A stretch of DNA of 64,000 bases, taken from positions 20,460,001 through 20,524,000 of the forward strand of contig NC_043005.1 in NCBI RefSeq assembly GCF_006345805.1, read 5' to 3'. Position numbers and translations under genes: made by a program. The stretch is from Octopus sinensis. Taxonomy: Eukaryota. The notes below the pieces were generated by a model. The model was not told where the DNA came from. It did not search any database and saw only the letters and a list, made by a program, of their open reading frames with translations. Within the stretch, counting starts at the first letter, position 1. Each line of letters opens with the position of its first letter. Below are positions 2,898 to 61,637 of the stretch, in pieces.

Positions 2898-3131
2898 CCA
2901 CTGATCATGTTTTTCAATTAAAAAAAGTTACCATAAGGGGGTATGATAATATTGGACGGCTTAAAAACATAGACCCAATGCAGTGTCATCAAGCATGTCA
3001 TGCATACTCAGGATGTTCATCTTATGAGTACAGTGAGACAACTAAGCAATGTGATCTGAGTAATGTGACTCACCTGACTCAAAAACTTGAACCCAGCAGT
3101 AAAGGTTGGGATATTTACATATTTAATCCAG
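2898..3131 (+). CDS. Exon PANa1: PAN/apple domain
   Basis: ttttttttccag|CC...AATCCAG|gtcagt; 234 nt; [77 protein letters not shown]; C-x3-C-x5-C-x11-C PAN core. Confidence 0.9.
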
Positions 3132-5522: not shown

Positions 5523-5576
<54 letters not shown>

Positions 5577-5612
5577 TACTATTATTATTATTATTACTAT
5601 TATTATCATTAC

Positions 5613-5679
<67 letters not shown>

Positions 5680-5853
5680 TAGTTTTATTTTTATAGCGTG
5701 CTTTCACTTCACTACCGAGCGCAGCTCTGTGTGCCTTGGGTATGTGCTGTGATTTGTTGTGATGCTCTGATGGTTATTGTATGGAAAGTGTTCTGCGTAG
5801 GATGTGTGCAGTGCCTAGTAGTGCAATTTTCTGTATGTTATATGTGTTTGTAA

Positions 5854-5891
<38 letters not shown>

Positions 5892-5912: not shown

Positions 5913-5974
<62 letters not shown>

Positions 5975-8900
5975 TATTATTTTGGTTTAGCTCAGGTTTA
6001 GTCTTATTCATGGTGGGATTTATGTGGGTAGCGGGTTACTATCTGTAACCTTCGGTATCCACAAGTTATCAGCAGTCTTTCAAGTGCTTAGAACCCTCCT
6101 GATAATCCTTGTTGTCCCTAAGAGACAAATTTTCTGTAGAAGCTCTACTGGGCATTCTATTTCAATCTCCTTCAGCTATTTATCTATATCTTTGCTTACT
6201 GTTCCCAGTTCACCAATTATAGGTATATATTTACTGTTCTCATCCTCCAAATTCTTCCTATTTCAAATTGTAAGGGACTGTATTTTTCTGTTTTTTGTCC
6301 TCTCGCTTTACAATCATGAAATCAAATGAGCATGATTGGTCGATCAGTAAGCAACTTTGCTTTTCCTTATCTATAATTGTTAGTTTTGGTCTATCATTTT
6401 CTAATTTCTTGTCCATCTGAATAGGAAAGTCCCACAAAATTTTACATTTCTCTAACAGACAAACATGTATGTATGTATGTATGTATGTATGTACGTATGT
6501 ATGTATGTATGTACGTACGTACGTACGGACGGACGGACGGACGGACGGATGGACGGATGGATGGACGGATGGATGGATGGACAGATGGATGGATGGGTGG
6601 ATGGCCGGATCTATGCATGTATGCCTGTATGTATGTATACACATATATCTGTATAAACCATATGTTCATGTAGATATATATTTGTATACTTTCATATGCA
6701 TGAGAGTGAAGCCCTGGTAGAATGATCTAGCAGGAGATAGAGGACATGTCTGCACCAGTGCATGTAATGGATAGCTATGAGGTGGGAAACTGTGGATCAA
6801 TGTGTGTGCACATGCAGTTCTTTGTTGGGAACATGATGTTCTCGATGGTTCTCAGGGCTCTGGTATTGAAGCTGTTGATGCTCTTTGCCAGAGTTTTCAA
6901 GAGGGGCCATGTTTCTGCTTGACAGATGGCGGGATATGACTAAGGAAGATCTTTGGAGGCCTGGAGGATGCAGAGGGGCTGACATGGGACTGCCAACAAT
7001 GGAGAGCACTGGTGGACCTGGTCAGCTCTATGCATGATGATGGCTTTGGGATCACTAACCTGGGATGACTCCAGACCCATCAAACAAGATCATGAAGCAA
7101 GCAAGCGACATATGCACGTATGTATTTGTGTAAATATGTATGTGCAAATTTCTTAAATTTGTTTCATTCAATATCTTTTATTACAAATTGTCATTATCTC
7201 TTCATTTTCATATAAGGCCATTTTTATGAACTTCTATCAATTTCAGCTTATTTACATATTCACTGTGGAAGTCCAAAATATGTTGAAGGTGCATTGAAGT
7301 CCTACACGACCACCAACTACAAATCAGTAGTGGAATATTCTTGCCCAGGGGGTGAAAAATTTAAATCAAGATGTGAACAAGGAGGTAAATGGACTCCAGT
7401 AATAGCTACTTGTAAAGGTAACATAAATCACATCTTTCTTGTTGCTACTGTATTGATAACTTTATTTAATTTTTTAATGAAATATTTTAGTCAGAGAAAA
7501 AATGGCTGACTCCATGGCAATTTCCACAGTATCTGTGGCTGGTCGGAGAGAGAGAGGACATTATCCTCAGACCTAAGACCCCTCCAAATGTTTGGAAATG
7601 TGGAAGCTTGTCTTCTCTGCCATGATTCCAAATAGTTCCAATCTACCAGATTTCAACCTTAGTTGTGAAGCAAATGTTTAATCACATAACCAAGACTCCA
7701 CACAATACCTCATTGTTGTGACATGAACTTATTAATCCCAAGCTATATTTGACCCATTTCTCTTTATTTCTGACTTAAGTTGTCCCACCCATAATTTGTT
7801 TCATCATCCATCTCTCTGTACAATATAATGTACTGAATCCTTCATTACTAGATTTTGGCTATCCTCTGAAACAGCTATTTGATGATCCATTGATCTTTTA
7901 ATCACTGCCCTTAATTAAAATAATACTGCAAATAATTATAATGGTCTCTGATTTTGGCTTATGGCCATCAAATTTTGATGAGAGTGGTTTAGTAATTACC
8001 ATTGACCCCAGTACTTGACTATTACTTCATGTTTTAGACTGCTGCTAGGATGACAGATGGAGTTAACCTTGGTTGAATTTGAACTGAAAATAAAAAGAGC
8101 CTGAATATATAGTGTAAATAATTTCTTTGAAAACATCAATGATTCTTCCACTCAGCCACTTATAATTGTATAATTGATAATAGTAATGATTTTTTTTTAT
8201 TTGTCTCTAGGACATGATATTAGGCAGATGATACAAAGATAAGCATAAAATATAATTGTTTATAGAGAATCAAACAAGTAAAAGAAAAATATTAGTTTAC
8301 ATGTATACGTTTAAAAGAAAGATGAGAATGATGATACAGTCTTCCTAAATATAGAAGGATCTTTATCTAGGGCCAGCTGAAGAACTCCATCATTGAAGAT
8401 CATCCTTAACTCCAAGGACAAATGTCCACCCCAGTTATACAGGCCTGCTACCAAAAAATTGTTTCACATATATTGGGTGAAGCTGTTCAACTTTTACTTG
8501 CTGATTTCGAAAATTACAAAGAAATTATCCTATCATGTACAGTTTCTTCCAAAAATTGATCATTGCATTTACCATTATGCCTGATTTTGACTATTGCCTT
8601 TATCATTACTATTGATTGCTATATTTAAATAGACATTAACAGTATAATAGGTGTAATTTTGTAAAATAAGCATCTAGCAATGTTTAGATTGCTTCAACTA
8701 CACAGAGAGGTACCTGCATCATGGTAGCTTCAGTTGCCTACAAGCAGTGAGGAAAGAAAGACATGCATTACAAGGTCATGTTATTCAAGTATCTTTTTAT
8801 ATTTCAGTTATTTCCTCATGCCTTTTTCAATATACATATGCTATGGTGCATTGTTTTATTATATCATATATTTTAAAGCATCTTTAATGATATTATGTAT

Positions 8901-11900
8901 ATACTTAGATGATAAATCAAATATATAAACTAGAAAAGCACTCAGAGAGTGTAGACCTCTGCCAAGCAGCTCATTTCCACCCATATACACACATGCTAAA
9001 AATCACCCAATTTCCCAAACTAATGCCAGCAAAAACATAACCTCATTGGCAAGGTTTAAAAAAAATAACACAGCCATATGAATTTAAAAAAAACCCTTAA
9101 AAACAGGTATCATCTGAAGCAGTTATAATACATCAATGACAACAGCAAGCTAGTTTCACCATACAACTAAAAAGAAACAACAATTACCTAAAACTTGAGT
9201 GATACACACACAACGCAAGTAAAATTACTAATAGAGAAACGAAAATAAACTTTGGAAACAGCAACGCCACCATAGGTTACGTTGAAACAATGAACGTGTT
9301 TTCAAGGGAGATAATCAAAGAACGTAACAATACTTCATGTAAAGTAAATATAACAAATGAAAAATCTTTCAAGAATCCATACAAATTCCTGGATCACTAC
9401 CAAATTTTCATCATCTGTTCCTTGTGTCATTACCAACTTTTTCTGCAAGTTTCATCAAATATTATTCACAATGTTTTGAGTTATTTTGCACACAGACGGA
9501 AAACCAATACTGATGAAAACATGACCTTCCTTGGTGGAATTAAAAATGTCCCCTTTCCCTTTCCTTACAGACTTCCTCATAATTTGAAGTAAGGATGTGT
9601 TCTTGAAGATGTACAGCAATCTTGGATAATTTTTTATTACATTTGTAATGAGTTTATGACTAAAATACATAAAAAAACATTACAAAATTTGTCAAAAATG
9701 TTACTATGCTTACATTGGTGTGAAATTAGGAGACCAAGATAAGAAGTGGGTTCCTCATAAGGCTTGCTCAATTTGTGTTGAAGAACAAAGAAACAAAGAC
9801 GATGGACAAATATACAGGGAAGTCATTTCCTTTTGGGGTTCTAATGATATGGAAAGAGCCTAAAAATCAGTGAAGAGTGTTACTTTTTGCTCATGTAAGG
9901 TGTAGGAACACAATTTGAAGGGTGAGAAAAACATTGTTTATCCAAATCTTCCATCTGTACTGTGACCTGTTGCTTATTGACCAGATGCTTGAGTCTTATC
10001 ACTACCAGGAAATCTTGAAGACATACGCTTGAGTTATGAGTCAGAAGATAGAAATAGTAATGATGATGAAAGCTTCAATTGCAGTGAAGGTAAAGAGTCT
10101 CAACTATTCAACCAATGTGAGTTAGATAATCTAATCAGGGACTTGGGGCTCACAAGCTTTTAGGTTCCAGACTTAAATCCAAGAATCTTTTAGCTCCTCA
10201 CACATAATTCTATTGGTATTATAATTGCGAAAGGGAATTTGTTCCTTATTTTTCACAAGAAAATGATTTGGTTTATTGTACTGAGCCATCAGGGCTAATA
10301 AGAAAATTTGGGATAAATTACAGTCCTGATGAATGAAGACTCTTTATTGACTTTTCGAAGAGAAGTATTAAAGCTGTTCTACTACATATGCTTTCATACC
10401 TGTTCAACACTCAGTGATCATGAAGGAAGCATATGAAAATTTGGTGTCACTATTACCCAACAATAAATTTAATGATTACAACTGGATAATTTGTGGTAAC
10501 TTGAAAATAATTTGCTTGGACAAAAGTTAGGCTACACAAATCTCCTTTGTTTCTTGTGTAAATTGGACAGTAGAAGTAGGAACCTCCATAAGTCTAAAAA
10601 AGAATGACCAGCTTGTATATGCTTAGACTAGGAACAAAGAATATCTTTTGAGAAAATTTGGCTGACCTGAAAAGGGTTCTTTTACCTCCTCTACATGTAA
10701 AACTTGGCCTCATGATATAATTCATAAAAGATTTGCTACAGGATGGAGAGGGCTTTGGGTAGTTGCATAGCAAATTTCCTGTGTTGTCAGATACCAAAGT
10801 TGAAGAGGGTGTATTTGTAGGACCAGATATAAGGAAACTTGCCAAGGATGAAAATTTTTAAAATTCTCTTAGTGATTCTGAAAAGATGCATGAATTAGTT
10901 TTAAAGATGTGAAGAAGAACTTCTTGCATAATTACAAGGATCAAAACTAAAAAGATACTGTGGGAAGAATGCTGGAAAATTTTTAGGTCTTAGGATGTAA
11001 AAGGAACATCAAAATTCATTTCCTATATGCCCATTTTGGATTTCTTTTGAGAAAATCAGGGGGATCTGAGCAAAGAACAGGGGGAAAAGTTTCATCAAGA
11101 CATAATGGAAATGGATAGAAGATATCAGGGAATATGGAATGTCAATATGATGGCCGACTACTACTGGATGTTGCATTGTGAATGTCTGTCAAATAATCAC
11201 AAGTGAAAGAGTTTCAGACATAGTTTCCGAGTGAAAAAGAAATGAAAAGAAGGAGTTAACCTTCTAAAGATGATGACTTCTTTTTATTGCTCACTAAAAT
11301 TATAATGTTGATGAATAAAATTTCTTAGCTTGTTACATTAAATTGTTGACATCTACTCCAAATTTAAATGAATTCACTAGAAACATTGCAAAATCAGTAA
11401 AGCAATGGGTTATAAGTAAGGCCTTGCCACGACAAAACATATTTAGTTACTTTCTTTTACATTCTGGGTGTGCTTAGCTTTTTATTCTTATGAGGTTGAT
11501 AAACTCTAATCAAGTCTGAGATGGATTTATTCTTTAGTATTCTTACTGCAGAATGTCTGTAGTTGTATTTAAGCTATCAAAAATTATTATTAATTTTGTT
11601 AACGTCAACAGCAATTATCAACTTTGTTAATGGATTGACCATTTGACATTAGACAAAATGTATTGTGGTATTTGTTCTGGCTCTTTACCTTCTGGTTTCA
11701 AATCCTGCTGAGGTTAACTTTGTCTTTCTTTCTTTGGCTGTCAATGTAAATATATCAATCAAGGGTAGAAACCAATTTAATTGACAAACTCCAACTCAAA
11801 GTTTTGGCTTTCCATGTTAGAAATTATTATTGTGGTGGTTATCATTTTTCATTGGCCTAAATTTTACTTTAATCCTAGATATTGACATCTATTTTGTGAA

Positions 11901-13337
11901 GATAAAGCAGGCAATTCTGGATGTATCAGGGAAATCAATGTGGTCTCCTAGAAGGAAAGGAGCAGAAAGCTGTGCAGAAAAATGTTTGAATAATGACGAA
12001 TGTTCATCATTTGAAGACTCAGAGGAGATGGGATATTGTTACCGATCAAAGGAAAGTGCAGCTACCTCCACGAAAATAGTGGAATTTGATGACAGAGATT
12101 ACTATCAAAAAATAGATCGTAATTATTCTTTGTATTTTATTATTAAACTCTTTTTTTTTTCTGAAATTTGTGATTACGTTTGTATTTCATTTTATGTAGA
12201 CCTACACTTCTGTAAAGACATTGTTAAATTTACCTATAAGGACAGACATAGTTACTGGAATATGACATGGTCCTTGGACCCTATAAGATCCTATCAAATT
12301 GTCCAAGCCATGTAAGCTTGAAACATAGACATTCAAAAATGATGATGGTGATGATGATATCAGGGCAATCTTATACAGCATTTGTTCACCCTAAATACTT
12401 TTTTTGCATCTTTTCAAATGTTTTTTGATGTAAGAAAGGCAAGTTTTGTTGTCTTTGTTAAACCTGAATAGTAGCAATAATAGAAGAAACAATAACTTTA
12501 TGTTCATTTTCCCATGTTGGCATTGTTTAAACTGTACTGTTACAAAACTGTCTCAAACCTAGTTGCTAGCCTTCAAAATCTAATATATATTATACATACA
12601 TACATACATACATACATACATACATACATACATACATACATACATGTATCCAATAAATCTAATTGGTGATGATTATTTGTATAAAACATAAGGAGAAGAG
12701 GTAAAAAATGGAAAAAAATTATCTTATACCACCTCTCTTTCTTTATATTTTATACACTCCTAATGAAATAATGTCTAACAAGTGGATTTATTGGATGGAT
12801 ACATACATACATACATACATACAAAACAAACAAACAAAATATAAAGAAAGAAAGGAGATATAAGATGAAAATAATTATTTCACCAATTGACATCCATACA
12901 ACTACGATCATTAAAAAAAAAAAGTGAAATGATCGTAGTTGTCAATTGTCAATTGGTGATATAATTTTTTTTAATCTTATACACTCCCAATGAAATAATC
13001 ATTACGAATAGGATTTATTGGATTTCAACTGCATTGGACTACAGATTACATCCCTTTATTTTGTTTTGGTTTACTATGTGGTTTGTAGCCTGATCCATTA
13101 AGAAGTTTTTTTTATGAGTATCACTAGATTAGTTAAATCCATATATTTTATAGTTTAAAAGTTTAATTTCTCTATCCTTAGAAAAAAAATTGTCTAACCT
13201 TACAAAAAATTTTTTAATGATCATAATAATCAAATAGTATTATCTGATACGACCCTCCCATTTATCACTGTATCCAAGATGTAGGAGGGAGCAAAGGAGA
13301 CACAGACTGTGACATCCCATATATTGTCCATTAAATT

Positions 13338-44700: not shown

Positions 44701-44794
<94 letters not shown>

Positions 44795-45313
44795 TATATG
44801 TATGTGTGTGTGTGTGTATATGTGTGAAAGCATGAGTGTGTGTGCACATGCATGTGTGTGGATGTGTATGAGTATAAAATGTATTTCTTTCCCTTTTGTT
44901 TTTCCAGCTGATGCTAACATGATTGCATTAAAAGCAGTAGGCATACCAGGACAGGATAATATTGGACGGCATGATAGTGTGGACGTAAAGGCATGCAATA
45001 AAGCTTGCCTTGAATATACAGGATGTACTTCTTATGAGTACAATGATAAATCTCAATACTGTGATTTAAGTAATGTGACTCATGCAACTCATGAACTTAA
45101 ACCCAACACTGCAGGTTGGGATATTTACATCTTAAATCCAGGTTAGTAGAATATTTTCTCATTTTATCCTTTGCATGTCTGTTTGTATTTACATACCTGA
45201 ATATGTATATAATACATATGAATATAATATATATGTATATATACATATATGTATGTATATGTGTATATATGTGTGTATGTGTATGTATGTATGAATATAT
45301 ATATATATGTATA

Positions 45314-45362
<49 letters not shown>

Positions 45363-48300
45363 CCCATGCTAGCATGGAAAATGGACGCTAAATGATGATG
45401 ATGATGATGATGATGATGATATATAGTAAATCCCAAAAGGAAGAAGAACAAACACAAAAACACAACAACACGAGCACGTGGTACATGTAAAGTATTAGCA
45501 GATGCTCAAGGAAGGAAAGAAAGATGGTTTAAGGTTTCGGGCAATGCTCTTCTTCAGGAACAGAGGAAAGTTCAGTAGAAAGGAAGACAGAGGAAGACAA
45601 TCGCCAGTGATTCACATGTGGTTAAATTTTGAATATATATATATATATATATAAAGGTATGTGCGTTCTTAGTTCATGGGTCAGCTGCTGTCTTTAGGTG
45701 TAAGAGAATATATTCTTTATGTGCTTGGTGTAAAAAATACTTGAAAGTAAGTTACAGTCAAGTGAGACAACTCACATCAGGTCATTTCTCAGAGCAACAG
45801 ACATCATGTTTCATTACTGTTTCGACTTATCAACAAGGCCTGCTGCAAGCCATATTACCGACTATGACTATATGCCAAATAGTTTAGACACCATCTGCTG
45901 GTATGTCCCAACGTTTGCTACTTAGGTGAGATAATGAGCAGTGGAGGAGGTTGTACAGAAAGTGTAATAGCTAGAATAAGAATAGAATAGAGAAAGTTCA
46001 GAGAACTTTTACCTCTGTGTGAAGGCAAAATTGTACAATATGTATGAACTGTGATACTGCATGATAGTGAGACCTGAGCCCTGAATGTGGGGGACATGCA
46101 AAGACTGGAGAAGAAGGAAGCTGGTATGCTCTGCTGGATGTGTGATGTCAGTGTGCATGTGTGACAGAGCACTGGTGTGCTGAGAGAGAAACTGGGAATA
46201 ATAGGAATTATATGCAGTGTATAAGAAGAGACTGCACTGGTTTGGCCATAAGATGTGGATGGATAAGGACAGTTGCATAAAGAAGTACCAATCAGAAGAT
46301 TGGGAAGAGGGAGATCCAGGAAGACATGGGATGAAGTACTGAAGGCCAATCTCAAAATGCTGAACCTTATGAAGGAGATGACAGAGGACTGAGATATGTG
46401 GCGCATTGCTGTACTTGTGAAGATCTGCCCACAACAGAATCAAAATCTTAAAACCAAGGTGCCACATAAAAAGCACATAAAAAAGCACCAGTACACTCTG
46501 TGGGGTGGTTGGTGTTAGGATGGGCATTCTATGGAGCTTGGTGCAACCTCTGGCCTTATCTGTTCCTGTCAAGCCATCCAACTCATGCCAGCATGTAAAA
46601 TAGATGTTAAATGATGATGATGATGATGATGATGATGATAATGATGATGATGATAATGATGATGAATTTGTGTATTGAAACAAATTTTGTTGTGTTTTGG
46701 CAGAGTCATTACACTAATAATTATAACACATGTACAGATTCCGTTCCACTTCTCTATTGTTAGTCAGTTGGTTAAATATCTAACCAACTTAACTAAGCAA
46801 TTATTTGTTTAATGTGTTGATTAAACAATCAATAGGTTGTTTGTTAGTCAAAGTTCTTTCATTATTGTTAACAACCTCTTCAGTGACTTAATGACTTCTC
46901 ATCTTACTCCAAGGTCTGTTCTGAGTCTATCTGAGAATTATTCTTATGTTTGTATATATGCATGCTTGTATGTGTGTGTGTTTCTAAACAAAAGAGTGTG
47001 TATGGATGGATAATAGTACATTTAGCCTTTGTGATCCTGAAATAAAAGAGGTATGGAAGAACTACTAGGAAAGGCTATTAAAGGTAGAGAATGAATTGGA
47101 GAGAGGGAATCTCCCCATGTGAACCCAACAGAGGGATAATCTACTCTAGTCAACAGCTGCATGACAGATAAGGCAAATGAAGATATGAAGACAGGGAAAG
47201 ATCCTAGTCCATTAAGAGTTACTGCTGAGATGCATTAGATATCTAGTAAGGTACAATGCAGATTAGTCACCTGCTTAGTTAATCAGGTTATTCAGTAAAT
47301 AGTATTGCTCAGTGACTATCATAGTAAGCAGCTATGAGGGCAAAAGAAATGCTTTAGATAGCAGTAATTATATAGGGATCAAATTGCTGGACTAGGTGAT
47401 GAAAGTTGTGGAGAAAGTTAATTAGGAACAGAATTAGAACTAAATGAAATGCTGTTTGGCTTTATCCTGGGGAGAAGCATCGCAGATGCTATTTTTACAG
47501 TCAAGAAACTGTGAGCAGTATTTAGCTAAGATCAAATGGTTGTACTTGGCATTTGTTTTTCTAAAGAAAGCCTTCAATAGAATACTTTGCTTTGTGATAT
47601 GGTGGCCTCTGATGATGATAGGAATAAATGAATGACTTGTGAAAGCAGAACAATCCATGTACAGAGGTTCTGTCCATAAGGTAAGAGTTGGTTAGGGGTG
47701 TACAGGTGGGTGTTCACCAAGGCTCAGTTCTCAGCCACCTCCTACTCATCATCGTCTACCAGGCCATACCAAAGGAATTCAAGACTGGTAGCCCATGGGA
47801 ACTGTTATATGCTGATGATCTTGCTCTTATATCAGGTTCTGTTACAGAACTAGAAATGAAATTCCAGGCTTGAATGTAACACCAGAAATCAAAGGGCCTT
47901 AAGATTAACTTAGCAAAGACTAAGGTGCTAGTAAGCAAGAAAACAGACAGGATCCTTCTCCTATCAGGTAAATAGCCCTGCTCAATATGTAGAGATGGTG
48001 TAAGCAGGAATTCCATACAGTGTACCAGTGCAAGCTATGGACTCAAGAGATGCAGTGGAATAGTAGGAAGTTTTGTATGTGAAAGATGTAGAGGAGCCAT
48101 AAAAACTACAGATTCTTGGGATACTGATTTCTCAAATGACCTGAAGGCACTTCAGGGGTAGTGAATAGTGTCTGCAACCTAGAGAACCTAATTAGCCATG
48201 GGAGAGGATGCATAGAAATTGTAATTTCTAGAATAAGAATAGGATGGACAAAATTCAGAGAGCTTTTACCTTTGCTGGCAACCAAAGATCTCTCTCAGAG

Positions 48301-48826: not shown

Positions 48827-51800
48827 AGTGTGTATGTGTGTGTGAGTGTGTGTGTGTGTGTGTATGGCCATTCCTCAATGGAAAGGAGGCCAGTCGATTA
48901 GATTGACTCCAGTATGCAACTGGTACTTAATTTATCGACCCCAAAAAGATGAAAGGTAAAGTCGACCTCAGTGGAATTTGAACTCAGAATGTAAAGACAG
49001 ATGAAATACCACTAAGCATTTCACTTGGCGTGTGAGCGTTTTTGCCAGCTCGCCACCTTTAAATATATTGAGTATATTATGAAAAACCTGTCCTGTTTTG
49101 TTTTCCACACTATGTTTGTTTGTGTGAATGTATTTTTGTGTTTTCTTCAATATGAAGTAGGGCAGCATAAAATTTTAGAGAATATTATGTAGCGTGATTT
49201 TGATTGCAGGAAATATCTATATGAGAAAGAGTAGTTGGTACAAGTAATAGTTGGTATCTTTCATTTAAATAACAAAGAATTTTGTTCATTGAACTATTGA
49301 GGATATGAAGATGTGGGAAACACTTGTGTATGAAAAATTGACTCTGATATGCTTAAAATATCTAGCAGAGTAGACTAGAATCTAGTTCCTCAATTATCAA
49401 ACTAAATAATATGGGAATGTTATATGCAAGGACTAGAAATGCATTATAAAGGGTAATAAAGGCAATGGAAATACATAGAATAAGGAGACTACAAGAGCAT
49501 CAAATTTTCAAACATAGCCAACTGCTACAAAGGTAAAGGTGACGCTTTAGACTGGTATAGCAGCACCATAGTCAACTGCTACAAAGGTAAAGGTGACGCT
49601 TTAGGTACAAATAATTACAGAGGTATCAAGTTGTTGGATCAGGTAATGAAGGTCACGGCAAGGTCATAGCCCAACTATTTAGGGAGAGAGTCAGTTTAGA
49701 CGAGATGCAGTTTGGGTTCATGCCAGGGAATTGCACCACTAATGCTATATTTCTGGTAAGACAGCTGCAGGAGAAATACCTAACCAAAGATAAACCTCTG
49801 TACCTGGCTTTCATTGACATGAAGAAAGCCTTTGACAGGGTCCCCCCGATCCCATATCTGGTGGTCAATGAGGAACCTAGGGTTAAGGCAACCTGTGGAA
49901 GCTATCCTCATCCATTCTCACTACATCACCACAGCTATCTCTCTTTCACACCACATCTGATACTTCTATGGTCCAACTTTTCTCTCAAGGTACTTAAACT
50001 CTGTCGAGTATGCACACTGACATTACACATCCAGCGGAGCATACTGGCTTCATTCCTTGCAAGCTTACGCATGTCCTCAGCAGTCACGGTCCATGTTTCA
50101 CTGCCATATGGTGGTTTAGGGAACCTGTGGATGAGGTGGTGAAGCACGACTTTCAAACATTAGGCCTCAGTGAGGCAATGACTATTGACCGAAATATGCT
50201 GTGCTTGAGAAGACCAGGCAAGCTAAGTGAGACCATAACCTGTGGCCTATTCCAGGGGTTTAACCAGCCCTCTTATCTGTACCTTTCCTTCATTGGACAC
50301 TAAACTTTGCTTGCGAAGACCTGTTGAGGTAAGTGAAATCGAAATCGAAATCAAATTTGATGACTGGCATCTGTGCCAGTGGAGCACTAAAAGCATCATC
50401 CTAGCATGATCGTTGCCAGAGCAGCTGACTGGCTTCCGTGCCAGTGGCACATAAAAAGCACCATTCAAGCATGATTGTTACCAGCATCGCCTTACTGGCA
50501 CTTGTGCCCTAGTGAATGTGAAAACTATTGCAGCAAGGGTCATCAGCAGTGCCGCCTGGGACTGGTTCCTGTGCAGATGGCATGTTAAAAAAAAACCATT
50601 TGACTTGCCCTCGTGCTGGTGGCACGTAAAAGCACCCACTACACTCTCGGAGTGGTTGGCGTTAAGGAAGGGCATCCAGCTGTAGAAACTCTGTCAGATC
50701 AGATTGGGGCCTGGCGCAGCCATATGGTTCGCCAGTCCTCAGTCAAATCGTCCAACCCATGCCAGCATGGAAAGCGGACATTAAACGATGATGATGATGA
50801 TGTTTGAAGTGTATCAAAGACTAAGAGAGGATTTGCAATCATTCTCTGATGATTATGTAATGTTAGTGTGCATGAATAGAAGAGTAAAAATGAGCAAAGG
50901 AAAAGCTATATATAATAGAATCTAATATGATGTGAAGAAAAAAAAAACTTCTATGGTTCAGGCATATGATGCATATAGAGAATGATTGCTATATAAGAAA
51001 TTGTCAAGTGATCAAACTGAACAAAATTTGCAGAAAAGGGAGACTGAGGAAGACTCAAGACAAAACAGAGAAGACAAAAGATGATGATAATTGGTGTTAT
51101 GTAAAGCTGCAGTAACCTGATGAAATGTACATTAGAAACAGCTGTGTTGAACAATGTGTGTGGGTGTATTTATATCTCTGTGCAACTTGCTTCACTCAAT
51201 AAATTTCATTGTAAACCTGTTATGTTCTCATTCTCATCCTCCTCCTAACATACTTTCACCATTAGTGTCAATTTCTGTCATCAATCAAGAAGATGATGAT
51301 GATAATTGGTGTTATGTAAAGCTGCAGTAACATGATGAAATGTACATTAGAAACAGCTGTGTTGAACAATGTGTGTGGGTGTATTTAATCTCTGTGCCAA
51401 CTTGCTTACTCAATAAATTTCATTGTAAACCTGTTATGTTCTCATTCTCATCCTCCTCCTAACATACTTTCACCATTAGTGTCAATTTCTGTCATCAATT
51501 CCAGCTTATGTGCAAGTTAAATGTGGACCTCCAAAAGATGTTGCTCTTGGCAAAAAGGCCTACACTACCACCAGATACAAATCTGAGGTGACTTATACTT
51601 GTGATGATGGAAATCAATATAAGTTGACATGTGAAAAGGACAGTAAATGGAGTCCCATAACATTTTCTTGCAAAGGTAACGTAAACAGCTTTTCTCTATT
51701 TGCCTCTGTCTATGTGACTTTTTAAAAAGAGTTTAAATTATGTGTTTTTGTCAGAAGAAAGTTGACTCTTCATACATACATCTTCTTTGCCCATTTAATG

Positions 51801-52766
51801 CCAGAATGGGAGAGGGGAAAGAATCCTCAAGCATACCTTTCATGAGATCCTGTCAGAAGCAACTGTCTTCTGTTAGACCCCAAGACTAGCCAAGCACATG
51901 CATGTTATCCAAGCACCTTGCTCGTGGTTTATTCCTGGGTCTCCTGCCTGTTGGTTTTGCCTGTAAAACAAGTCTTTCCCAATACAATCTTACCACATGC
52001 CCATATTATCAGAGTTGTGATCTCTTAATTTGGAGACATTGTGGCTCCACCTGGAGTGACACACCGATTTCTGAGCTACACATTCTATCGAGAACATTAC
52101 TCCTATGTCCCTTTGGTGTGAACCCCATCTTGACCACTTGTATTGGTGATCGTATTGCTTCAGTCATCCCATGAGTTATGACCACAGGTAAGGATAGGCT
52201 TAAATACCAATTATTCAGCATTTGCACTTACTTCTCTTCTGATGATGATGGAATGTTGAAACTGGCACATTACTGCCCCAGCTCCTGTAATTCTTGCACA
52301 TGCATCACAACCACATGTGTATGACATGGTGACCTCCTATCATAAAAAAAAAATGCATAATCTTACATGTGGAACCCAGTTAGAACTTTTTTCAGATTGA
52401 CTGGCTCATCCTACTCAAAAGGTCCCTAAATAAGGTTTGTTTAAGGATGATGAACAAAACACCCACGTTTCCAGAGGCAAATTATTCAAACCCCAAAGAA
52501 TTTCTTTTGAAACATGGTTATGAAATTCCTCACAACTCCTGTTCATGGTCAGAAAAGCACATATCATCAGCCACTGAAGGACATACTCAACTGAATAAGG
52601 TCAAGCAACTGACAAGCAAATCTGTAGTATTGAGTAGAATATTTGCAATAGCCCACCTTTTACACCAAGACAAAGCATATACATGTTAACACTTCCAATC
52701 AGTTAAAATCAGAAGCCATGAGAGCCACTGCTTGTTACTGTATCATGGCATTATTATTATTATTAC

Positions 52767-52820: not shown

Positions 52821-54047
52821 CATCATTTTCGTTATCGAGTGAGAGAGTAATTCATGCCATCAAGGTGATACTGGGGCACAAATATATGAAGCCCTATATA
52901 CTCATCATGACTACCCATCTGATAAGGGTACATCAGGCACATGGTGGTCTCATATCAAGATAACCAGTACATGACCTTGCAGTTAGAGCCCAGTTAGAAT
53001 TTTTTACAGTTTGAATTGTCTTTCCCACTCAAAAGGTCACTGAACAAGGGTTGTTTAATGATGTTAAATGAAACACCCTCTCAACACATGGCTATGATGC
53101 TTCCCCTCGACCTTTGCTCATGATCAGAGATGCACACATCTTCAGTCACTAAGAGTTAAGGTCAAGCAACTGACAAGCAAACCTGTAATATGGAGCAGAA
53201 TATTTGCTGTAGACCATTTATTACCTCCGTCTTAGTGAAGGCGGAGGTATTGTTCTCAGTCATGTTTGTTTGTCCGTGGACAATATATCTCAAGAACCAC
53301 TGGATGGATTTGAATGAAAATTTCAGGGATGTTTAGCCTCATGACTGGCACAAACTGATTAGATTTTGGGACCAATCCAGCACCATACAAGGATTCTAGA
53401 TTATTTTTCATATTTTCTTTACATGTATATGTAGTTTCACATAATTCTCTTGTACACGCACACACACATGCAAATATACTTTTTTTTACACACACTTCAC
53501 ACTTGAAACACTTTTTATTGGCTTTTTCATTCCTTCCTTTGTTATTCATACAACACTCTCTTTGCCATTTATCTCCTCTATTTTCACCTCTCACTCTGGC
53601 TCTATTTTATATATTTATGTATATATATATATGTGTGTGTATAAATATATATAGAAATATATAAAAAGACAATGCTCATTATTATATTAGGAGATTATAC
53701 ATACATTTTAAAACTTTACAGTATACTTACCTATATACATAATTCTATACATTGATCTAAAACAACAGGGTTACTAAAGGAAGACCAGAATTTAAGAGAA
53801 GAGAAAACCAAAAGGTCTCATGATATTCATTGAATGGTTTTATTTCATATATTCTCATTTAAAAAATCATCTCCAGTTAATTGTCGAGAGGACGTTGATG
53901 TTGCATTGCCAGAGGTTTGCACTCTCTGAGTGCACTTGTTATCATTATTATTATTACTATTATTATTATCTTTTTTTTTTCTTCTTCTTTCAAATTTGCT
54001 TCCATTTCTTGCTGAGTGTCTTCCCGACTCCTAGGGCAAAGAAACTC

Positions 54048-54095
<48 letters not shown>

Positions 54096-55368
54096 GAATT
54101 TTTCTTTTTCTGCTGATTTTGTTTCCATTTCTTCCTCAGTACCTTACTGGTATCTAGGGTAAAGAAACTTACTCTATATATTGAAAGGCCATTAAATAAA
54201 CACTACAGATTTGTCATTTACAAAATCAAATAAAGTTAAGTAGAGAAAAAAAGATATTTGCATGGAAGGTTATCACAGAACATTGCCCTTCTCAGTATGA
54301 GTGATGTACTGTTTAAAACAATAATTGCTCTTTCTGCAGGGATGGTAAGCCAGGGATTATTCTCAAATAATATTCAGTTTCTTTTTTGATCATTCCTAGT
54401 GCTTTTACAATCACTGGTATTTTAATTGCCTTGAGATGTCACATTTTTCTATTCCAATGAGTAAAGTTTATATTTCATGAGTTCGTCAAACTCTTTGCCA
54501 CAATATAATGATCACAAGGGATACTCAAGTCAATAAACAGACTTTATTATTTTGGTCTTTTACAACAATGTCCTGTTTATTAGCTTTGATGGTTCAGTCT
54601 GTGTATAAAGGAAAATCACCAAAGAGCATAACATATTCTCCCTCAGTTGTGTTTACAGCATTTGTCAACAGTTTTGAATTATAATGTTGACATATTAACT
54701 AGTGTAGATATTTGAAGACTCTATCATATCTTGATTTATACTCTATTTGTGTTAAAACTTTACCTTATTGTTATTATTATTGAGTGAGAGAGCAGTGCAT
54801 GCCATCAAAGTGATACTGGGGTACAAATATACAAAGTCCAATATACCCATCATCACTACTTGTCTGACAAACATGCATCACAACCATATGTGAGTGACAT
54901 GATGATCTCATATCAAGATAAACAGCATATGACTTTGCAGGTGGGTCCTAGCTAGAATTTTCTTCAGATTAAGTGGGCCATCCCACTTAAAGGGTCCCTG
55001 AATAAGGGTTATTTAGTGATGTTGAATGAAACACCCATATTTCCAGAGGTGAATTATTCAAACTCCAAAGAATTCCTCTCAACACATGGCTATGATGCTC
55101 CTCCACTACTTCTGCACACATCATCAGCCACTAAGGGACACGCTCAACTGGTTAAGGTCAAACAACTGACAATCAAATCTGTGGTATTGAGCAGAATATT
55201 TGCTGTAGCCCATCTTTTATACCAAGACAAAACATGCACATGATAACACTTCCAATCAGTTAAGATCAGAAGCCATGAGAGCCAGCATGTGGTACTGAAT
55301 CAGGTCATTTATTATTATTATCATTATTATTATCATTATTATTATTATTATTATTATCATTATTATTA

Positions 55369-55429: not shown

Positions 55430-58400
55430 TTCTCTTTATCACAAGTTTTGTTGCAGCTCCTGGAGTTTTACATGTGTTGTGTATTATCATTATTAATACC
55501 TCTGCCTTAGCGAAAGTGGGGGCATTGTTTTCAGTTGCATTTGTTTGTTTGTTTGTTCATGGACAAGATATCTCAAGAACTGCTGGTTGGATTCAAATGA
55601 AATGTGATGAAGTTCACCTGTCATTTTATTCATTCCTCCAGGGTGTTATTTTAGTAACTCACAAACATATTTGCACTCATGTATTTTGAGGAGTGAAAGT
55701 GTAGTAGATTCAGAACATTTTCTGAGAATGTGCACTTTCAGATGTCCCTCAAAATTGCAGCTGCTTGATGTAAAATGTTTGGCAAATTCTGTCAAACTAC
55801 TGCAATTGTGCCTAATGAATCTACCTGTGCCTATTGAATCTTTTGTTCAATTGTTCTGTTGTACAGCCAACATAAATAAAGTTGTGTTTAGTGCATTCTG
55901 CTGCATACACCCAATGAGAATCTTTACATGTCTCACCTTTTGTATAAATCATAACGTTTCTGTTATGATTCTTGATGGATTTGACTCAACTCATGTTGTT
56001 GCACAATGAACAGGGCTAACTTCTTTTGCATCTGTTGCAGCATTCAGAAACACCAGTTTTAGTTTTGTTGGAGTCAGTAGTAGAGGATAATATTTCTCTT
56101 ATATTTTGTTGAGGGCTACTGAGTTATAGCTTAGACTTGTTCAACCATCTGCTGCTCCATTTTTCTTTGCAATACACATATCATATGCTCTCTTATTACA
56201 AACCACTTGTACAACTATCTGTCACTCACATCTTCTCCTTGACCACTTTAGTGTTGATGTCATCATAAAATACACTCTGTATACTCCACACTGTAAAGTG
56301 GTTGGTGTTTAGGAGGGCAGCCAGTCAAAGAAATCTTACTAAATAAAACATACAAGTAGGAAAAGATGCATATTCATGGTTCAAGGGAATGCTACAAGTC
56401 TGAATGAGAGGTGACTGATATTGCATGAAGGGATCCAATTTGCACTAGCAGCATAAAATGATGATAATAATACTAAAATATTTATATGCATCAACACACA
56501 CAAATATACAAGGTATGTATTGAAACATATCTGAATATATGTATTCACTGTTTTACACATGCATATATGTATGTACATGTACATACACCCATATGTGTGT
56601 GCGTGTGTGTGTGCGTGCTTGTGCGTGCTTGTGTGTGTGTGTGTGTGTGTGTGTGCATTCATATCACTGTGTAAATAGCTCAACTTGCTTCAGTCAGTAC
56701 CTTTTATTGTAAATTTGTTACCTTCTCATTCTCACCTTCCTCCTAACATACATTCACCATTAGTGCTAATTTCTCTCATTAATTTCAGGTAAGGTTGACT
56801 GTAAAACTCCAAAAGATGTTGCTGGTGCAAAAAAGACCTACACTACAACTACCTTAAAATCTGAAGTGATTTATACTTGTCCAAAAGGAACGAAGCTAAA
56901 ATCAATATGTGGAGAGGACAATAAATGGAGTTCACTTGCATTTTCTTGCAAAGGTAACATAAACAGCTTTTCTCTATTTGTCTCTGTCTAGGTGACTTTT
57001 TAAAAAAAGTTTTACTTATGTGTTTTTGTCAGAAGAAAGTTTGCTCTTCATACATACATCTTCTTTGCCCATTTAATGCTGGAAGGGGAGTGGGGGAAGA
57101 ATCCTCAAGCATACCTTTCATGAGATCCTGTCAGAAGCAACTGTCTTCTGTTAGTCTCCAAGACCAGCCAAGCACAGGTATGTTATCCAAGCACCTTGCT
57201 CGTGGTTTATTCCTGGGTCTCCTGCCTGTTGGTTTTGCCTGTAAAACAAGTCTTTCCCAATACAATCTTACCACATGCCCATATTATCAGAGTTGTGATC
57301 TCTTAATTTGGAGACATTGTGGCTCTACCTGGAGTGACACACCGATTTCTGAGCTACACATTCTATCGAGTAACATTACTCCTATGTCCCTTTGGTGTAA
57401 CCCCATCTTGACCACTTGTATTTGTGATCGTATTGCTTCAGTCATTACCCATGAGTTATGACCACAGGTAAGGATAGGCTTAAACACCAAATTATTCAGC
57501 ATTTGCACTTACTTCTCTTCTGATGATGATGGAATGTTGAAACTGGCACATTACTGCCCCAGCTCCTGTAATTCTTGCACTAAATTGAGCCACTTTCTTT
57601 TAATCACTTGTGAAAACAATTCCTTGATACTTGAACTTCTCCTGCTTCAGCGAAACTTTATTTATATGTAGAGTACTTCACGCAAGCTTCTTAAGAGAAT
57701 TAGTGTCTTAATCTTTGCAGAACTGATTTTCTATCCTGCTGAGCAGCTCTCAGCAGGAAACCTCTCATGAGCTTGTCAGAGATCACCTTCTGATGAGTTG
57801 AGTCATTCAAATTTCAGCCAACTATTCCTATACCTACTGGTCTCAATTCCACTTTCAACTCAGTTGCACATGTTAGTCCTTTCCTCTATGGGTGAAGTTT
57901 GACATCCATAGAGATTTCAAGACAACAAGCTGTCCTTTATTCATTGTCCCATCCTCCTGAAGAACCTCCCACAATACGTCCTGAGTGATTTAGTCATATA
58001 TAGCCTTTTCAAGGTCTACAAAGCAAGCATACACCTCTTGACCATACTTCCATGATGTCTTGAAAATTTGTTGCAGTTTGCATATTTGGTTGTCTGTGCT
58101 GTATCCGTTGTGAAAAACCACACTGTTTGCCTGCCAGCATAGATTTGACAATATCCTAACAACTCTTCATCAAACACTCAGCATAGATTCTAATGGGGGA
58201 GCTTCACAAGGAGATTCTTCTATAATTAGTGCATTCTGCCTTGCCTCCCTTTTTGAAAATTATTCATCTGAGGCTGAATTTTGTCTTCTCCAGGAACCTT
58301 GCCGTATTTGAGCTTTGTAATTGCTCTTGTGACCAGTTTCTGAAAGGTTAGTCATCACTCCTAGATGCACCTCATATGTGTCAGAAGATGGACCAAGTAT

Positions 58401-61400: not shown

Positions 61401-61637
61401 ATATACAGCTCAGCTTCGTGAAAGTAAAGAACGCCAGTCTGGATGTACTTAAGAAAACATTGATAGATAGCAAAACCTTAACAGGAGAAGCCTGTGCAGC
61501 AAAATGCATGACTCTTGAAAGTTGTTTATCATTTGAAATAACAAAAAGTGGAAAATGTTATAAGTTAGAGGATACTGCAGCTTTCTCTAACCATATAAAG
61601 ATAACCCCAAACAGAGATTACTACCAACGAGTAAAAC
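2898..61637 (+). CDS. Multi-exon modular PAN/apple + Sushi(CCP) domain gene or tandem gene cluster, partial; 11 domain exons, all phase 1-1
   Basis: Eleven exons with canonical polypyrimidine-AG acceptors and GT donors, lengths 234,171,240,234,171,168,240,234,171,165,237 (all multiples of 3), no internal stops, conserved Cys spacing. Junction codons (G+CT, G+GT, G+AT, C+CC, C+CT) are all sense. No ATG or signal-peptide exon seen in the window. Confidence 0.85.
3512..4228 (-). mobile_element. Degraded mariner (DD34D-type) element
   Basis: Minus strand [19 protein letters not shown]...HPGRS and [10 protein letters not shown]...[16 protein letters not shown]; terminal TA|ttgggtcatcccataaataatg. 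Confidence 0.75.
4229..4900 (-). mobile_element. R4/Dong-like non-LTR retrotransposon RT fragment
   Basis: [42 protein letters not shown] (RT N-terminal block). Confidence 0.65.
5524..5980. repeat. Long (ATT)n microsatellites
   Basis: Direct reading; other long arrays at 1430-1545, 19997-20078, 43843-43997, 52750-52822, 54048-54094, 55308-55428, 63661-63775. Confidence 0.95.
5677..6460 (-). mobile_element. Two stacked R4/Dong-like 3' ends, each with an (AAT)n tail
   Basis: 5981-6460: RLE domain [34 protein letters not shown] and [17 protein letters not shown]. 5677-5853: [16 protein letters not shown] plus 3' UTR. ATT arrays at 5524-5676 and 5856-5980. Confidence 0.75.
6465..6645. repeat. 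Compound tetranucleotide microsatellite (ATGT/ACGT/ACGG/ATGG)
   Basis: Direct reading. Confidence 0.95.
7247..7417 (+). CDS. Exon CCP1: Sushi/CCP domain
   Basis: caatttcag|CT...TGTAAAG|gtaaca; 171 nt; [56 protein letters not shown]; 4 Cys, C-x2-P start, V-x-Y-x-C, C-x5-W-x6-C. Confidence 0.9.
8211..8242 (+). CDS. Putative terminal mini-exon T1 ([10 protein letters not shown]-stop)
   Basis: Strong acceptor atttttttttatttgtctctag|GACAT; in phase 1 it reads to TAA at 8240-8242; homologous acceptor after CCP2 at 30602. Confidence 0.45.
9590..11230 (+). mobile_element. Degraded DNA transposase, CMC/Chapaev3-like
   Basis: Frameshifted motifs [87 protein letters not shown]. Family assignment is from memory of these motifs. 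Confidence 0.65.
11879..12118 (+). CDS. Exon PANb1: PAN/apple domain, second subtype
   Basis: ttttactttaatcctag|AT...GATC|gtaatt; 240 nt; [79 protein letters not shown]. Confidence 0.88.
13379..13765 (-). mobile_element. Non-autonomous Helitron
   Basis: On the minus strand, 3' end cccgagcaacgccaggcaatactgCTAG|t with subterminal hairpin; 5' end TATATATATAAAGCTGTAGTTGTCTGT. Confidence 0.7.
14453..14673. mobile_element. piggyBac-type MITE
   Basis: TTAA|cccttttgttac ... gtaatgaaaggg|TTAA (TTAA on both sides, about 12-bp imperfect TIR). Confidence 0.75.
15002..15540. repeat. Long inverted repeat, arms about 195 bp, spacer about 147 bp
   Basis: 15002-15198 is the reverse complement of 15346-15540 at roughly 90% identity; no clear TSD. 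Confidence 0.9.
15640..16300 (+). mobile_element. RTE-LINE 3' end plus SINE-like tail ending (GAT)n
   Basis: Similar to the 3' end of the RTE copy at 33764-35560; ends aacccatgccagtatggacaatgaatgctaaatgatgatg. Confidence 0.65.
17580..19430 (-). mobile_element. R4/Dong-like RT C-terminal fragment interrupted by a mariner
   Basis: EGYKYLGVL ... KEY|[24 protein letters not shown] ... [12 protein letters not shown]; the frame joins across the mariner TA site. Confidence 0.7.
18054..19340 (-). mobile_element. Full-length mariner transposon, 1287 bp, frameshifted transposase
   Basis: TA target duplication (18052-53, 19341-42); 37-bp TIR cgagg(g/a)cgttcaataagtaatgcc(c/t)ctgacccactt with 2 mismatches; ORFs 18916-19218 and 18245-18934 with [19 protein letters not shown]. 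Confidence 0.95.
20731..20964 (+). CDS. Exon PANa2: PAN/apple domain
   Basis: gatttttttccag|CC...AATCCAG|gtcagt; 234 nt; [77 protein letters not shown] (the ORF track splits it over two frames). Confidence 0.9.
21155..22230 (+). mobile_element. Non-autonomous Helitron (about 1.08 kb)
   Basis: A|TCTTCTTTAAATATAAAACTGAGAATGTGTGTCTGTCTG 5' end; 3' hairpin gaccc-ggcaacgat-gggtc followed by tttaatgCTAG|T. Confidence 0.75.
22231..25641 (+). mobile_element. Helitron with degraded Rep/PIF1 helicase
   Basis: [62 protein letters not shown]; 3' hairpin caccgtcc-gaa-ggacaggtg then catttgCTAG|T at 25638-25641; the 5' boundary is inferred. Confidence 0.8.
25128..25540 (+). mobile_element. tRNA-derived SINE nested in the Helitron
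   Basis: A box tggcttagtggttagg, B box gagttcaattcc. Confidence 0.65.
25656..26140 (+). mobile_element. tRNA-derived SINE with internal (TA)/(TATG) microsatellite
   Basis: ggcataggagtggctgtgtggtaag...ggttccgagttcagtcc head; tail ggtgctccagcatggccacagtc also seen at 1-200. Confidence 0.7.
26159..27050 (+). mobile_element. Penelope-like RT fragment with inverted partial duplication
   Basis: [32 protein letters not shown]; 26159-26315 is inverted relative to 26464-26597. Confidence 0.75.
27490..28070 (+). mobile_element. Degraded RTE-LINE 3' fragment plus tail
   Basis: Homologous to 34560-35560. Confidence 0.65.
28400..29150 (-). mobile_element. R4/Dong-like fragment (zinc-knuckle region)
   Basis: Minus strand HGYLAQK...[17 protein letters not shown]...[20 protein letters not shown], a degenerate CRxC...HI...C knuckle. 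Confidence 0.55.
29607..29777 (+). CDS. Exon CCP2: Sushi/CCP domain
   Basis: ctcttgttaatcccag|GT...TGTAAAG|gtaaag; 171 nt; [56 protein letters not shown]. Confidence 0.9.
30602..30669 (+). CDS. Putative terminal mini-exon T2 ([22 protein letters not shown]-stop)
   Basis: acttcatttatttgtttctag|GACAT...ATACAAAGA, homologous to T1; phase-1 frame ends at TAA 30667-30669. Confidence 0.45.
31222..32330 (-). mobile_element. Degraded mariner element
   Basis: [14 protein letters not shown]...[22 protein letters not shown]; TA|ttggattggagcaaaagt terminus. Confidence 0.7.
33764..35560 (+). mobile_element. Young 5'-truncated RTE-clade LINE; 356-aa RT ORF at 33774-34844, 3' UTR and (GAT)n tail
   Basis: [48 protein letters not shown]; single frameshift near the C-terminus. 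Confidence 0.92.
35684..35851 (+). CDS. Exon CCP3: Sushi/CCP domain (absent from ORF track)
   Basis: ttctgttaccaatttcag|CT...TGTAAAG|gtaaag; 168 nt; [55 protein letters not shown]. Confidence 0.87.
36707..37982 (+). mobile_element. Tc1/mariner-superfamily element, maT/DD37D-like, 1276 bp, degraded
   Basis: TA|cagggtgtc(t/c)caaaattaaggcaacca TIRs (about 27 bp, 1 mismatch), TA on both sides; [28 protein letters not shown]. Confidence 0.88.
39822..40061 (+). CDS. Exon PANb2: PAN/apple domain
   Basis: tcttattttaaatgtag|GT...GTAGAAC|gtaatt; 240 nt; [79 protein letters not shown]. Confidence 0.88.
40975..41500 (+). mobile_element. RTE-LINE 3' fragment
   Basis: Homologous to 34660-35230. Confidence 0.65.
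42400..43150 (-). mobile_element. LINE AP-endonuclease region fragment (RTE-like)
   Basis: Minus strand GAVIDTDH motif in degraded coding-like sequence. Confidence 0.45.
44908..45141 (+). CDS. Exon PANa3: PAN/apple domain
   Basis: cttttgtttttccag|CT...AATCCAG|gttagt; 234 nt; [77 protein letters not shown]. Confidence 0.9.
45915..46640 (+). mobile_element. RTE-LINE 3' fragment plus SINE-like tail
   Basis: Homologous to 34380-35560. Confidence 0.65.
47400..48720 (+). mobile_element. Degraded RTE-LINE RT fragment
   Basis: [27 protein letters not shown]. Confidence 0.75.
49515..50800 (+). mobile_element. RTE-LINE with internal inversion (+/-/+) and SINE-like tail
   Basis: + strand [15 protein letters not shown]...[13 protein letters not shown] (49705-49850); - strand [16 protein letters not shown] (49935-50105); + strand 3' end from about 50120. 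Confidence 0.75.
51078..51499 (+). repeat. Tandem duplication of about 208 bp containing the CCP4 branch/polypyrimidine region
   Basis: 51078-51285 and 51290-51499 are near identical. Confidence 0.95.
51505..51675 (+). CDS. Exon CCP4: Sushi/CCP domain
   Basis: ttctgtcatcaattccag|CT...TGCAAAG|gtaacg; 171 nt; [56 protein letters not shown]. Confidence 0.9.
53220..53420 (+). mobile_element. DINE-1/Helentron-like non-autonomous element
   Basis: attacctccgtc...ggcggaggtatt subterminal hairpin followed by gtttgtttgt; similar copy at 55495-55630, reverse copies near 9030-9055 and 9440-9545. Confidence 0.55.
53940..54760 (-). mobile_element. R4/Dong-like RLE domain and two stacked 3' UTRs with (AAT)n tails
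   Basis: Minus strand [27 protein letters not shown]; 3' UTR motif gtttcttt(a/g)ccctag...aagaaatggaa repeated twice, each followed by AAT repeats. Confidence 0.65.
56789..56953 (+). CDS. Exon CCP5: Sushi/CCP domain (absent from ORF track)
   Basis: ttctctcattaatttcag|GT...TGCAAAG|gtaaca; 165 nt; [54 protein letters not shown]. Confidence 0.87.
57090..58690 (-). mobile_element. RTE-like LINE inserted in the CCP5 downstream intron; its end is shared with 51840-52299
   Basis: Minus strand [27 protein letters not shown]...LQIKRSQL; post-CCP intron homology resumes at about 58700. Confidence 0.6.
59926..60210. mobile_element. hAT (Charlie-like) MITE
   Basis: TIRs cagtgcttctcaaa / tttgagtagcactg; degenerate 8-bp TSD ctctagat / cactaggt with CTAG core. 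Confidence 0.75.
61401..61637 (+). CDS. Exon PANb3: PAN/apple domain
   Basis: ttttactttaactctag|AT...GTAAAAC|gtaatt; 237 nt; [78 protein letters not shown]. Confidence 0.88.

Follow-up and report, generated by a model that had tools for sequence, protein, structure and literature searches.

In abalone lysin/VERL and in conotoxins, the fold is conserved and positive selection is concentrated at its surface. In snake venoms, the genes of three-finger toxins (3FTx) and phospholipases A2 (PLA2) undergo accelerated exon evolution and segment switching (ASSET), and some exon segments of 3FTx genes retain 12.5–50% identity, against more than 85% in intron segments (PMC2474615, PMC2711939, PMC6062510). 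The stretch considered here, 64 kb of the forward strand of Octopus sinensis contig NC_043005.1 (positions 20,460,001 to 20,524,000; hereafter the window), had been singled out in an earlier note for exons that diverge as fast as, or faster than, the neighbouring introns. It is read here, with fair though clearly incomplete confidence, as an interior stretch of a giant PAN–sushi gene in which a constrained scaffold, many near-neutral positions and a positively selected minority are overlaid by non-allelic exchange. In such a gene, ~27–29% of the codons (the Cys/Trp/core scaffold) would be constrained, with a nonsynonymous to synonymous rate ratio (dN/dS, or omega) of 0.15–0.25; about half would be effectively neutral; and ~13–20%, situated for the most part in loops, in turns and in the linkers between domains, would be under recurrent diversifying selection at omega 2.2–3.6, most strongly in the PANb domains. 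Non-allelic exchange would in addition reshuffle the array, two tracts of 0.5–0.6 kb downstream of adjacent CCP exons having probably been homogenised recently. That the coding sequence keeps pace with the introns would be due to the freedom, or the pressure, to change at most positions of the surface.

Like the snake toxin genes, the octopus array is a multigene family with a fixed Cys scaffold and an exon divergence equal to or above that of the introns, and it shares with ASSET the clustering of differences in short exon segments, a nine-codon loop differing at nearly every residue between CCP4 and CCP5. Unlike those genes, it is composed of exons that belong to a single giant gene of modular build rather than of small separate genes, its whole-domain omega is below 1, and its cleanest contrasts of intron over exon conservation reflect recent homogenisation. 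Abalone lysin/VERL and the conotoxins also differ: their folds are unrelated to the octopus modules, their partners are known and their whole-gene omega exceeds 1. The whole-gene dN/dS above 1 of toxin-type evolution was not observed (0.64–0.82 under the one-ratio model M0, 0.77–0.86 in orthologs); a codon class with dN/dS above 1 was found, and cross-validated, in the three domain classes, with a caveat of recombination in CCP. The phenomenon is of the known accelerated-exon-evolution kind; in the literature that could be searched, no description of the gene family or of its giant modular architecture was found. The venom and other secreted proteins of cephalopods have been characterised as mostly constrained (PMC4619613).

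The exons were located by tblastn with domain-like open reading frames (ORFs) followed by splice-site inspection throughout the window. Eleven were found, all on the + strand, in the module order PANa–CCP(1–2)–PANb repeated three times; each line below rests on this mapping, with any additional evidence named.

2898–3131, + strand: PANa1 exon, PAN/apple, 234 nt, phase 1-1 (also Pfam PAN_1)
7247–7417, + strand: CCP1 exon, sushi, 171 nt, phase 1-1 (also Pfam)
11879–12118, + strand: PANb1 exon, PAN/apple, 240 nt, phase 1-1 (also Pfam and AlphaFold2 model)
20731–20964, + strand: PANa2 exon (also Pfam)
29607–29777, + strand: CCP2 exon
35684–35851, + strand: CCP3 exon, 168 nt
39822–40061, + strand: PANb2 exon
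44908–45141, + strand: PANa3 exon
51505–51675, + strand: CCP4 exon
56789–56953, + strand: CCP5 exon, 165 nt
61401–61637, + strand: PANb3 exon, 237 nt

The start of PANa1 and the end of PANb3 are the outer limits of the span noted earlier (2898–61637). All 11 exons are flanked by AG and GT, have phase 1-1 and a length that is a multiple of 3, and their splicing gives a single open frame of 755 codons; the probability of as many stop-free random codons at the same base composition is ~1e-24 by the authors' arithmetic. The gene would encode a series of extracellular modules stabilised by disulfide bonds, each phase-1 exon supplying one domain. Neither a signal-peptide exon nor a GON-domain exon was found in the window, the latter in a search for GON-like matches at E ≤ 1, so that the window appears to be the interior of a longer gene, and it may end before the 3′ end of that gene.

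In the spliced product, Pfam PAN_1 (PF00024) scores 141.5 bits (cut-off 21.4), in six stretches that correspond to the six PAN exons, and Sushi (PF00084) scores 47.6 bits (cut-off 20.7). Four Cys are conserved in each of the six PAN exons, and each of the five CCP exons has four Cys and a Trp; the complete retention of Cys and Trp scaffold residues claimed previously holds for every Cys and for the Trp of PANa and CCP, but not for the PANb Trp, which is replaced in PANb3. Fewer family-conserved residues are retained in PANb1–3 and in CCP3, the most divergent CCP, which keeps 67% of them. The AlphaFold2 model of PANb1 (pLDDT 89.6), with one helix and seven strands, matches the PAN domain of plasminogen with a TM-score of 0.82 and a root-mean-square deviation of 1.7 Å; further structural matches are 1i8n, from leech saliva, and the galactose-binding lectin 2yil. 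The octopus PAN modules thus have a fold in common with the PAN/apple domains of plasminogen, HGF and factor XI, with leech anti-platelet protein and with apicomplexan microneme lectins, all of them protein- or carbohydrate-binding modules, although the identity is just 14–24%.

For comparison, five genomic loci (L001–L005) from three Octopus species were fetched, ~345 kb in total. Among same-class exon pairs in the window (n = 16), exon identity is 61–73% and that of the collinear flanks 64–84%, plus two flanks at 97%, the flank identities being biased upward as they come from local alignments. In PANb2/PANb3, for instance, the exon is 66.2% identical, the upstream flank 76.1% and the downstream flank 73.7% (533 bp), in line with the 70–75% previously proposed for these flanks, while the protein identity, put at ~46%, is 49% on recount. 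Within-species paralogs elsewhere (522 pairs over three classes) show the same relation, with exons and flanks at 66.5% and 74–75% in PANa, 72.6% and 73% in CCP, and 75.7% and 75–77% in PANb. In these comparisons, the conservation of the exons never exceeds that of their own introns, which is an unusual pattern. In all pairs the flanks align collinearly, directly adjoining the exons, over 50–600 bp per side, and this bears directly on the possibility, raised in the earlier note against its own reading, that independent insertions of common repeats produce the intron similarity. The window is indeed rich in transposon fragments (RVT_1, mariner, PIF1-like), but the similar flanks extend without a break from both ends of the exons, collinear in every paralog, and are native intron; of the two flanks at 97%, that shared by CCP2 and CCP3 matches the same post-CCP position in all five loci at 65–77%, and that shared by CCP4 and CCP5 was found nowhere else in the ~345 kb of family loci. 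Repeat insertion is, on these data, a most improbable source of the similarity, already refuted by flank collinearity and by the tract matches; a transposon origin of the similar flanks was likewise rejected, since they are native intron at matching positions.

The hand counts on which the suspicion of accelerated evolution was based were reproduced: 31 of 54 residues are identical in CCP4/CCP5, four of them with a synonymous change, and 40 of 77 in PANa1/PANa3, nine with a synonymous change. The repeated use of the same codons at conserved residues is also as noted, every PANa exon containing a single TCTTATGAGTAC and a single GGTTGGGATATTTACAT, and every PANb exon a single AGAGATTACTA. The reading of few synonymous changes as a low dS, however, fails, because the residue-identical codons carry just 13–25 synonymous sites, on which 4–10 changes amount to a dS of 0.26–1.2. 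Pairwise estimates in the window by the NG86 method give dN 0.30–0.63, dS 0.47–1.6 and dN/dS 0.26–1.3, mostly 0.5–0.9.

Between species, the evidence is derived from sister loci of the window gene, with 18 orthologous exons (1,214 codons) of O. bimaculoides and O. vulgaris. These exons have dN 0.086 and dS 0.111, with omega 0.77 (NG86) or 0.86 (YN00), and the collinear orthologous intron (17.9 kb) has a divergence K of 0.075 and a mismatch of 7.1%. Codon positions 1, 2 and 3 differ at 8.4, 7.9 and 8.7%, respectively, and the exons as a whole are 8.3% divergent vs 7.1% for introns (Fisher p = 0.006). Base composition was discarded as the cause, exon GC being 0.36–0.37 vs 0.364 in the window. 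An exon divergence equal to or above that of introns is seen in paralogs and in sister-locus orthologs, but the strongest contrasts, CCP2/CCP3 and CCP4/CCP5, are to be ascribed to homogenisation of the intron, as described below.

The site models that the earlier note had suggested were fitted with the authors' own GY94/F3x4 likelihood code on a neighbour-joining (NJ) tree, with M0 branch lengths then held proportional, and a positively selected class was favoured in CCP, PANa and PANb. In CCP (37 sequences, M0 omega 0.67), twice the log-likelihood difference (2ΔlnL) between M1a and M2a is 27.7, with 17% of sites at omega 2.2; in PANa (28 sequences, M0 omega 0.64) it is 26.0, with 13% at omega 2.3; and in PANb (28 sequences, M0 omega 0.82) it is 110.3, with 20% at omega 3.6. 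The M8a vs M8 comparison gives 21.0, 21.3 and 94.3 for CCP, PANa and PANb, respectively, and M7/M8 is concordant, while eight null sets simulated under M1a and passed through the same pipeline gave 0–9.1, the observed values lying far outside. When the posteriors were learned without any ortholog pair, the likelihood-ratio tests were still significant, and the sites flagged in this independent way have, in the ortholog pairs, a dN of 0.173 (confidence interval, CI, 0.124–0.235) vs a pooled dS of 0.107 (p = 0.007) and an intron mismatch of 7.1% (K 0.075; p = 1.5e-7). At flagged sites (P > 0.5), ortholog dN is 2.3 times intron K (CI 1.65–3.14), and in PANb the ortholog omega is 2.7 at flagged and 0.58 at unflagged sites. 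Sites learned without window sequences give, in the window's own pairs, omega ~2.0 when flagged and 0.50 elsewhere. Of the 15 flagged PANb positions (P > 0.8), 10 map on the PANb1 model to the N-terminal linker or to loops and turns, where there is no regular secondary structure; another four are located within a strand or where it ends, one is in the helix beside a Cys, and none is a Cys. The proposal of diversifying selection is accordingly supported for a site class of 13–20% of the codons, not for whole domains (omega 0.64–0.82).

Taken family-wide, these data support an unusually fast evolution on a fixed Cys scaffold that would be partly adaptive, and the window is consistent with it. 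Several points weigh against the adaptive component. Whole-domain omega (0.64–0.82) and most pairwise omega values are below 1; the site models depend on the authors' own code, on NJ trees from short alignments and on proportional M0 branch lengths; the null replicates are just eight, and one of them at 9.1 marks the test as somewhat liberal; the pairwise homoplasy index (PHI), which gives no signal of intra-exon recombination in PANb, is borderline in PANa and significant in CCP (p = 0.001–0.012), and recombination inflates likelihood-ratio tests. The ortholog evidence, moreover, comes from sister loci rather than from the window's own gene, and ectopic paralog conversion could import clustered differences at variable sites and thereby mimic ongoing selection in orthologs. 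Finally, when variable sites are defined solely by their conservation among paralogs, ortholog omega is 1.21, with a CI (0.80–1.89) that includes 1.

A rival account is relaxed constraint as the only process, with neutral drift outside the Cys/Trp scaffold and an omega > 1 class created by recombination, alignment or tree artefacts, an explanation that is unlikely but keeps some weight. It would agree with the overall omega, with the ~60% of sites to which M1a assigns omega = 1, with the equal divergence at the three codon positions, with the CI of the variable sites, with the PHI result in CCP and with the one null simulation in eight above the chi-square cut-off. It does not readily accommodate the PANb 2ΔlnL of 110, which is 12 times the largest null value in a domain class free of PHI signal, nor the independently flagged sites, whose ortholog dN exceeds dS and is well above intron K and whose omega is ~2 in the window's own pairs. 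The excess of dN over intron K also persists at the conservation-defined variable sites, where ortholog dN is 0.124 (0.099–0.150), ~1.65 times intron K, as compared with 2.3 times at flagged sites. A relaxation or pseudogenisation specific to the window was rejected, as the omega of its terminal branches equals that of the rest of the family, and frame, splice sites and Cys are intact.

A different process is visible beside the adjacent CCP exons, where two pairs of near-identical tracts were delimited by a two-rate change-point analysis of their starts (support intervals of ~10 nt).

29770–30303, + strand: homogenised tract, CCP2/3 copy 1, last 8 nt of CCP2 and 526 nt of native downstream intron, 97.3% identical to 35844–36395
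35844–36395, + strand: homogenised tract, CCP2/3 copy 2, end of CCP3 and downstream intron
51661–52299, + strand: homogenised tract, CCP4/5 copy 1, last 15 nt of CCP4 and 624 nt of downstream intron, 96.6% identical to 56939–57580
56939–57580, + strand: homogenised tract, CCP4/5 copy 2, end of CCP5 and downstream intron

Identity changes from 70.1% in the upstream flank and 67.9% in the exon to 97.3% over 526 bp downstream in CCP2/CCP3, and from 83.7% and 72.7% to 96.6% over 623 bp in CCP4/CCP5. The change points are at 29770 (support 29766–29775), 8 nt before the exon end, and at 51661 (support 51660–51669), 15 nt before it, and both tracts end abruptly 0.53–0.63 kb downstream. The synonymous sites of the exons, taken at residue-identical codons, are too diverged to share the history of the 97% tracts (P = 9e-7 for CCP2/3 and 0.003 for CCP4/5) and fit instead the 70–84% upstream flanks, and the partners of each pair are placed in separate parts of the CCP tree. 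The simplest reading is that of old exon duplicates whose downstream introns have recently undergone short-tract ectopic conversion; introns at 97% would then stand beside exons at 68–73% because of recent intron homogenisation, not of exon acceleration. A recent tandem duplication of whole CCP units of 5–6 kb was discarded, since only 0.5–0.6 kb are near-identical, with abrupt ends, and the rest is unrelated. Directly upstream of CCP4, ~205 bp are duplicated in tandem with 98% identity (51080–51285 and 51295–51499); the duplicated segment holds the polypyrimidine/branch region without acceptor or exon, the first copy being a flank without an exon.

Intron homogenisation could be extended to the whole pattern, the exons being normal and the introns kept alike by concerted evolution or gene conversion. 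The two sharp-edged tracts beside old exons, the duplication upstream of CCP4 and the PHI signal in CCP speak for it, and it accounts very well for the tracts, but not for the general pattern: the remaining paralog flanks, at just 64–84%, are not homogenised, no comparable near-identical tract was found in 243 CCP pairs of the other loci, and the exons outpace the introns (8.3% vs 7.1%) also between species, beyond the reach of intron conversion within an array. As the sole cause it is improbable. Less probable still is that CCP2/CCP3 and CCP4/CCP5 are mutually exclusive alternative exons and the tracts elements of splicing control, as their equal phase, near-equal length and adjoining conserved introns might suggest; annotated relatives contain both CCPs in series, an identity of 97% within a pair and 65–77% between modules denotes recency and not constraint, and the CCP2/3 and CCP4/5 tracts are unrelated to each other. 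Non-allelic exchange superimposed on a family with constrained, neutral and selected codons remains the preferred reading.

As to function, the gene product may be a secreted multivalent binding protein with binding surfaces driven to diversify, for which prey, pathogen or gamete are candidate partners. The strong site-specific signal of diversifying selection in PANb would point to a partner relevant to octopus feeding, defence or reproduction. More tentatively, the Octopus PAN–CCP–PAN arrays, with annotated products of up to ~4,470 residues, might constitute a cephalopod hypervariable recognition/adhesion system with frequent short-tract exchange among modules and selection purging the events that homogenise exons. 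Both tracts would then stop in the final 8–15 nt of the CCP exon because exon homogenisation is selected against, and all codon positions would outpace the introns between species because of exchange together with selection. With more than 100 intact exons, the array allows a direct comparison of coding and intron divergence, and it carries two methodological warnings, namely, that in tandem arrays a conservation higher in introns than in exons can stem from intron homogenisation, and that dS is misjudged by counting changed codons.

The nearest proteins, 39–49% identical, are uncharacterised products of O. bimaculoides, O. vulgaris and O. sinensis, together with GON-Abd-1 from Abdopus aculeatus. 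In the sister loci, the three-exon module is repeated head to tail, with 107 exons mapped in the five loci, nearly all of the lengths standard in the window (234, 171 and 240 nt); the annotated neighbouring gene models span 1,865 to 4,470 residues, and annotated relatives join PANb to the following PANa through an identical splice junction. The window is distinct from all five loci, because its exons are at most 76% identical to theirs, only transposon pieces reaching 80–92%, and a look-up of one window ORF as an exact product gave no match. The closest relative of every window exon sits in another locus (52–66% protein identity) and never in the window, and the NJ trees of the exon family are star-like. 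The O. vulgaris and O. sinensis sequences are 99.5% identical throughout the compared loci.

The GON domain (PF08685) is present in the relatives P0008 and P0002, and the coleoid GON relatives named in UniRef are GON-Abd-1 and GON-SepT-1/2; the coleoid GON proteins reportedly came from posterior salivary gland transcriptomes, in work by Ruder and colleagues in 2013, which PMC4619613 cites (its reference 18). They have PANb, PANa and CCP types in the same order as the window, with ~48% identity in a best local alignment covering 30% of the window protein, but they are short, begin with a signal peptide and end in a GON domain, whereas the window has neither and repeats the module many times. 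Short PAN–PAN–CCP–GON relatives are also present in a squid and a cuttlefish, and the giant arrays were seen, among the database relatives found, in Octopus species only. The window gene would belong to a large Octopus tandem array related to these short coleoid proteins; a possible toxin role is hinted at solely by that relatedness.

Some features of the sister loci concern their annotation and structure. The database gene models in L001–L005 begin or end mid-domain (P0001, for example, starts in the middle of a PANa exon), and intact module exons run past the model borders; therefore, the real genes probably exceed their annotated length. Incomplete module exons also occur, such as a PANb piece without acceptor (L005:53564–53719) and a CCP fragment (L003:556–609), and a 201-nt PANa variant is orthologous in two species (L001:32123–32323 and L002:81804–82004). 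Introns of O. vulgaris are 2–5 times longer than their O. bimaculoides orthologs, and in one case ~60 times (230 bp vs 13.8 kb), only a shared core being alignable between the orthologous introns of L001 and L002; the window introns, of 4–9 kb, resemble the O. vulgaris/O. sinensis state.

The window itself is AT-rich (GC 0.33–0.42), with many microsatellites and transposon fragments. Retroelement reverse-transcriptase ORFs lie inside introns at 33774–34844 (+), with RVT_1 at 57 bits and a PHD-like finger, and at 49705–50142 (+), and copies of the window retroelements, 78–92% identical, are found in the O. vulgaris and O. sinensis loci. A mariner/Mos1-type transposase at 18245–19218 (−) consists of two ORFs (Transposase_1 and HTH_48) and is apparently frame-broken, and PIF1-like helicase fragments (PIF1, Pif1_2B) at 23145–24470 (+), split into separate ORFs, are of the sort that Helitron-type elements carry. 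Long intronic microsatellite or low-complexity runs, such as 1421–1651, 6258–6720, 44693–45463 and 53820–54128, give rise to spurious long ORFs with poly-N, YIYI and HTHT translations.

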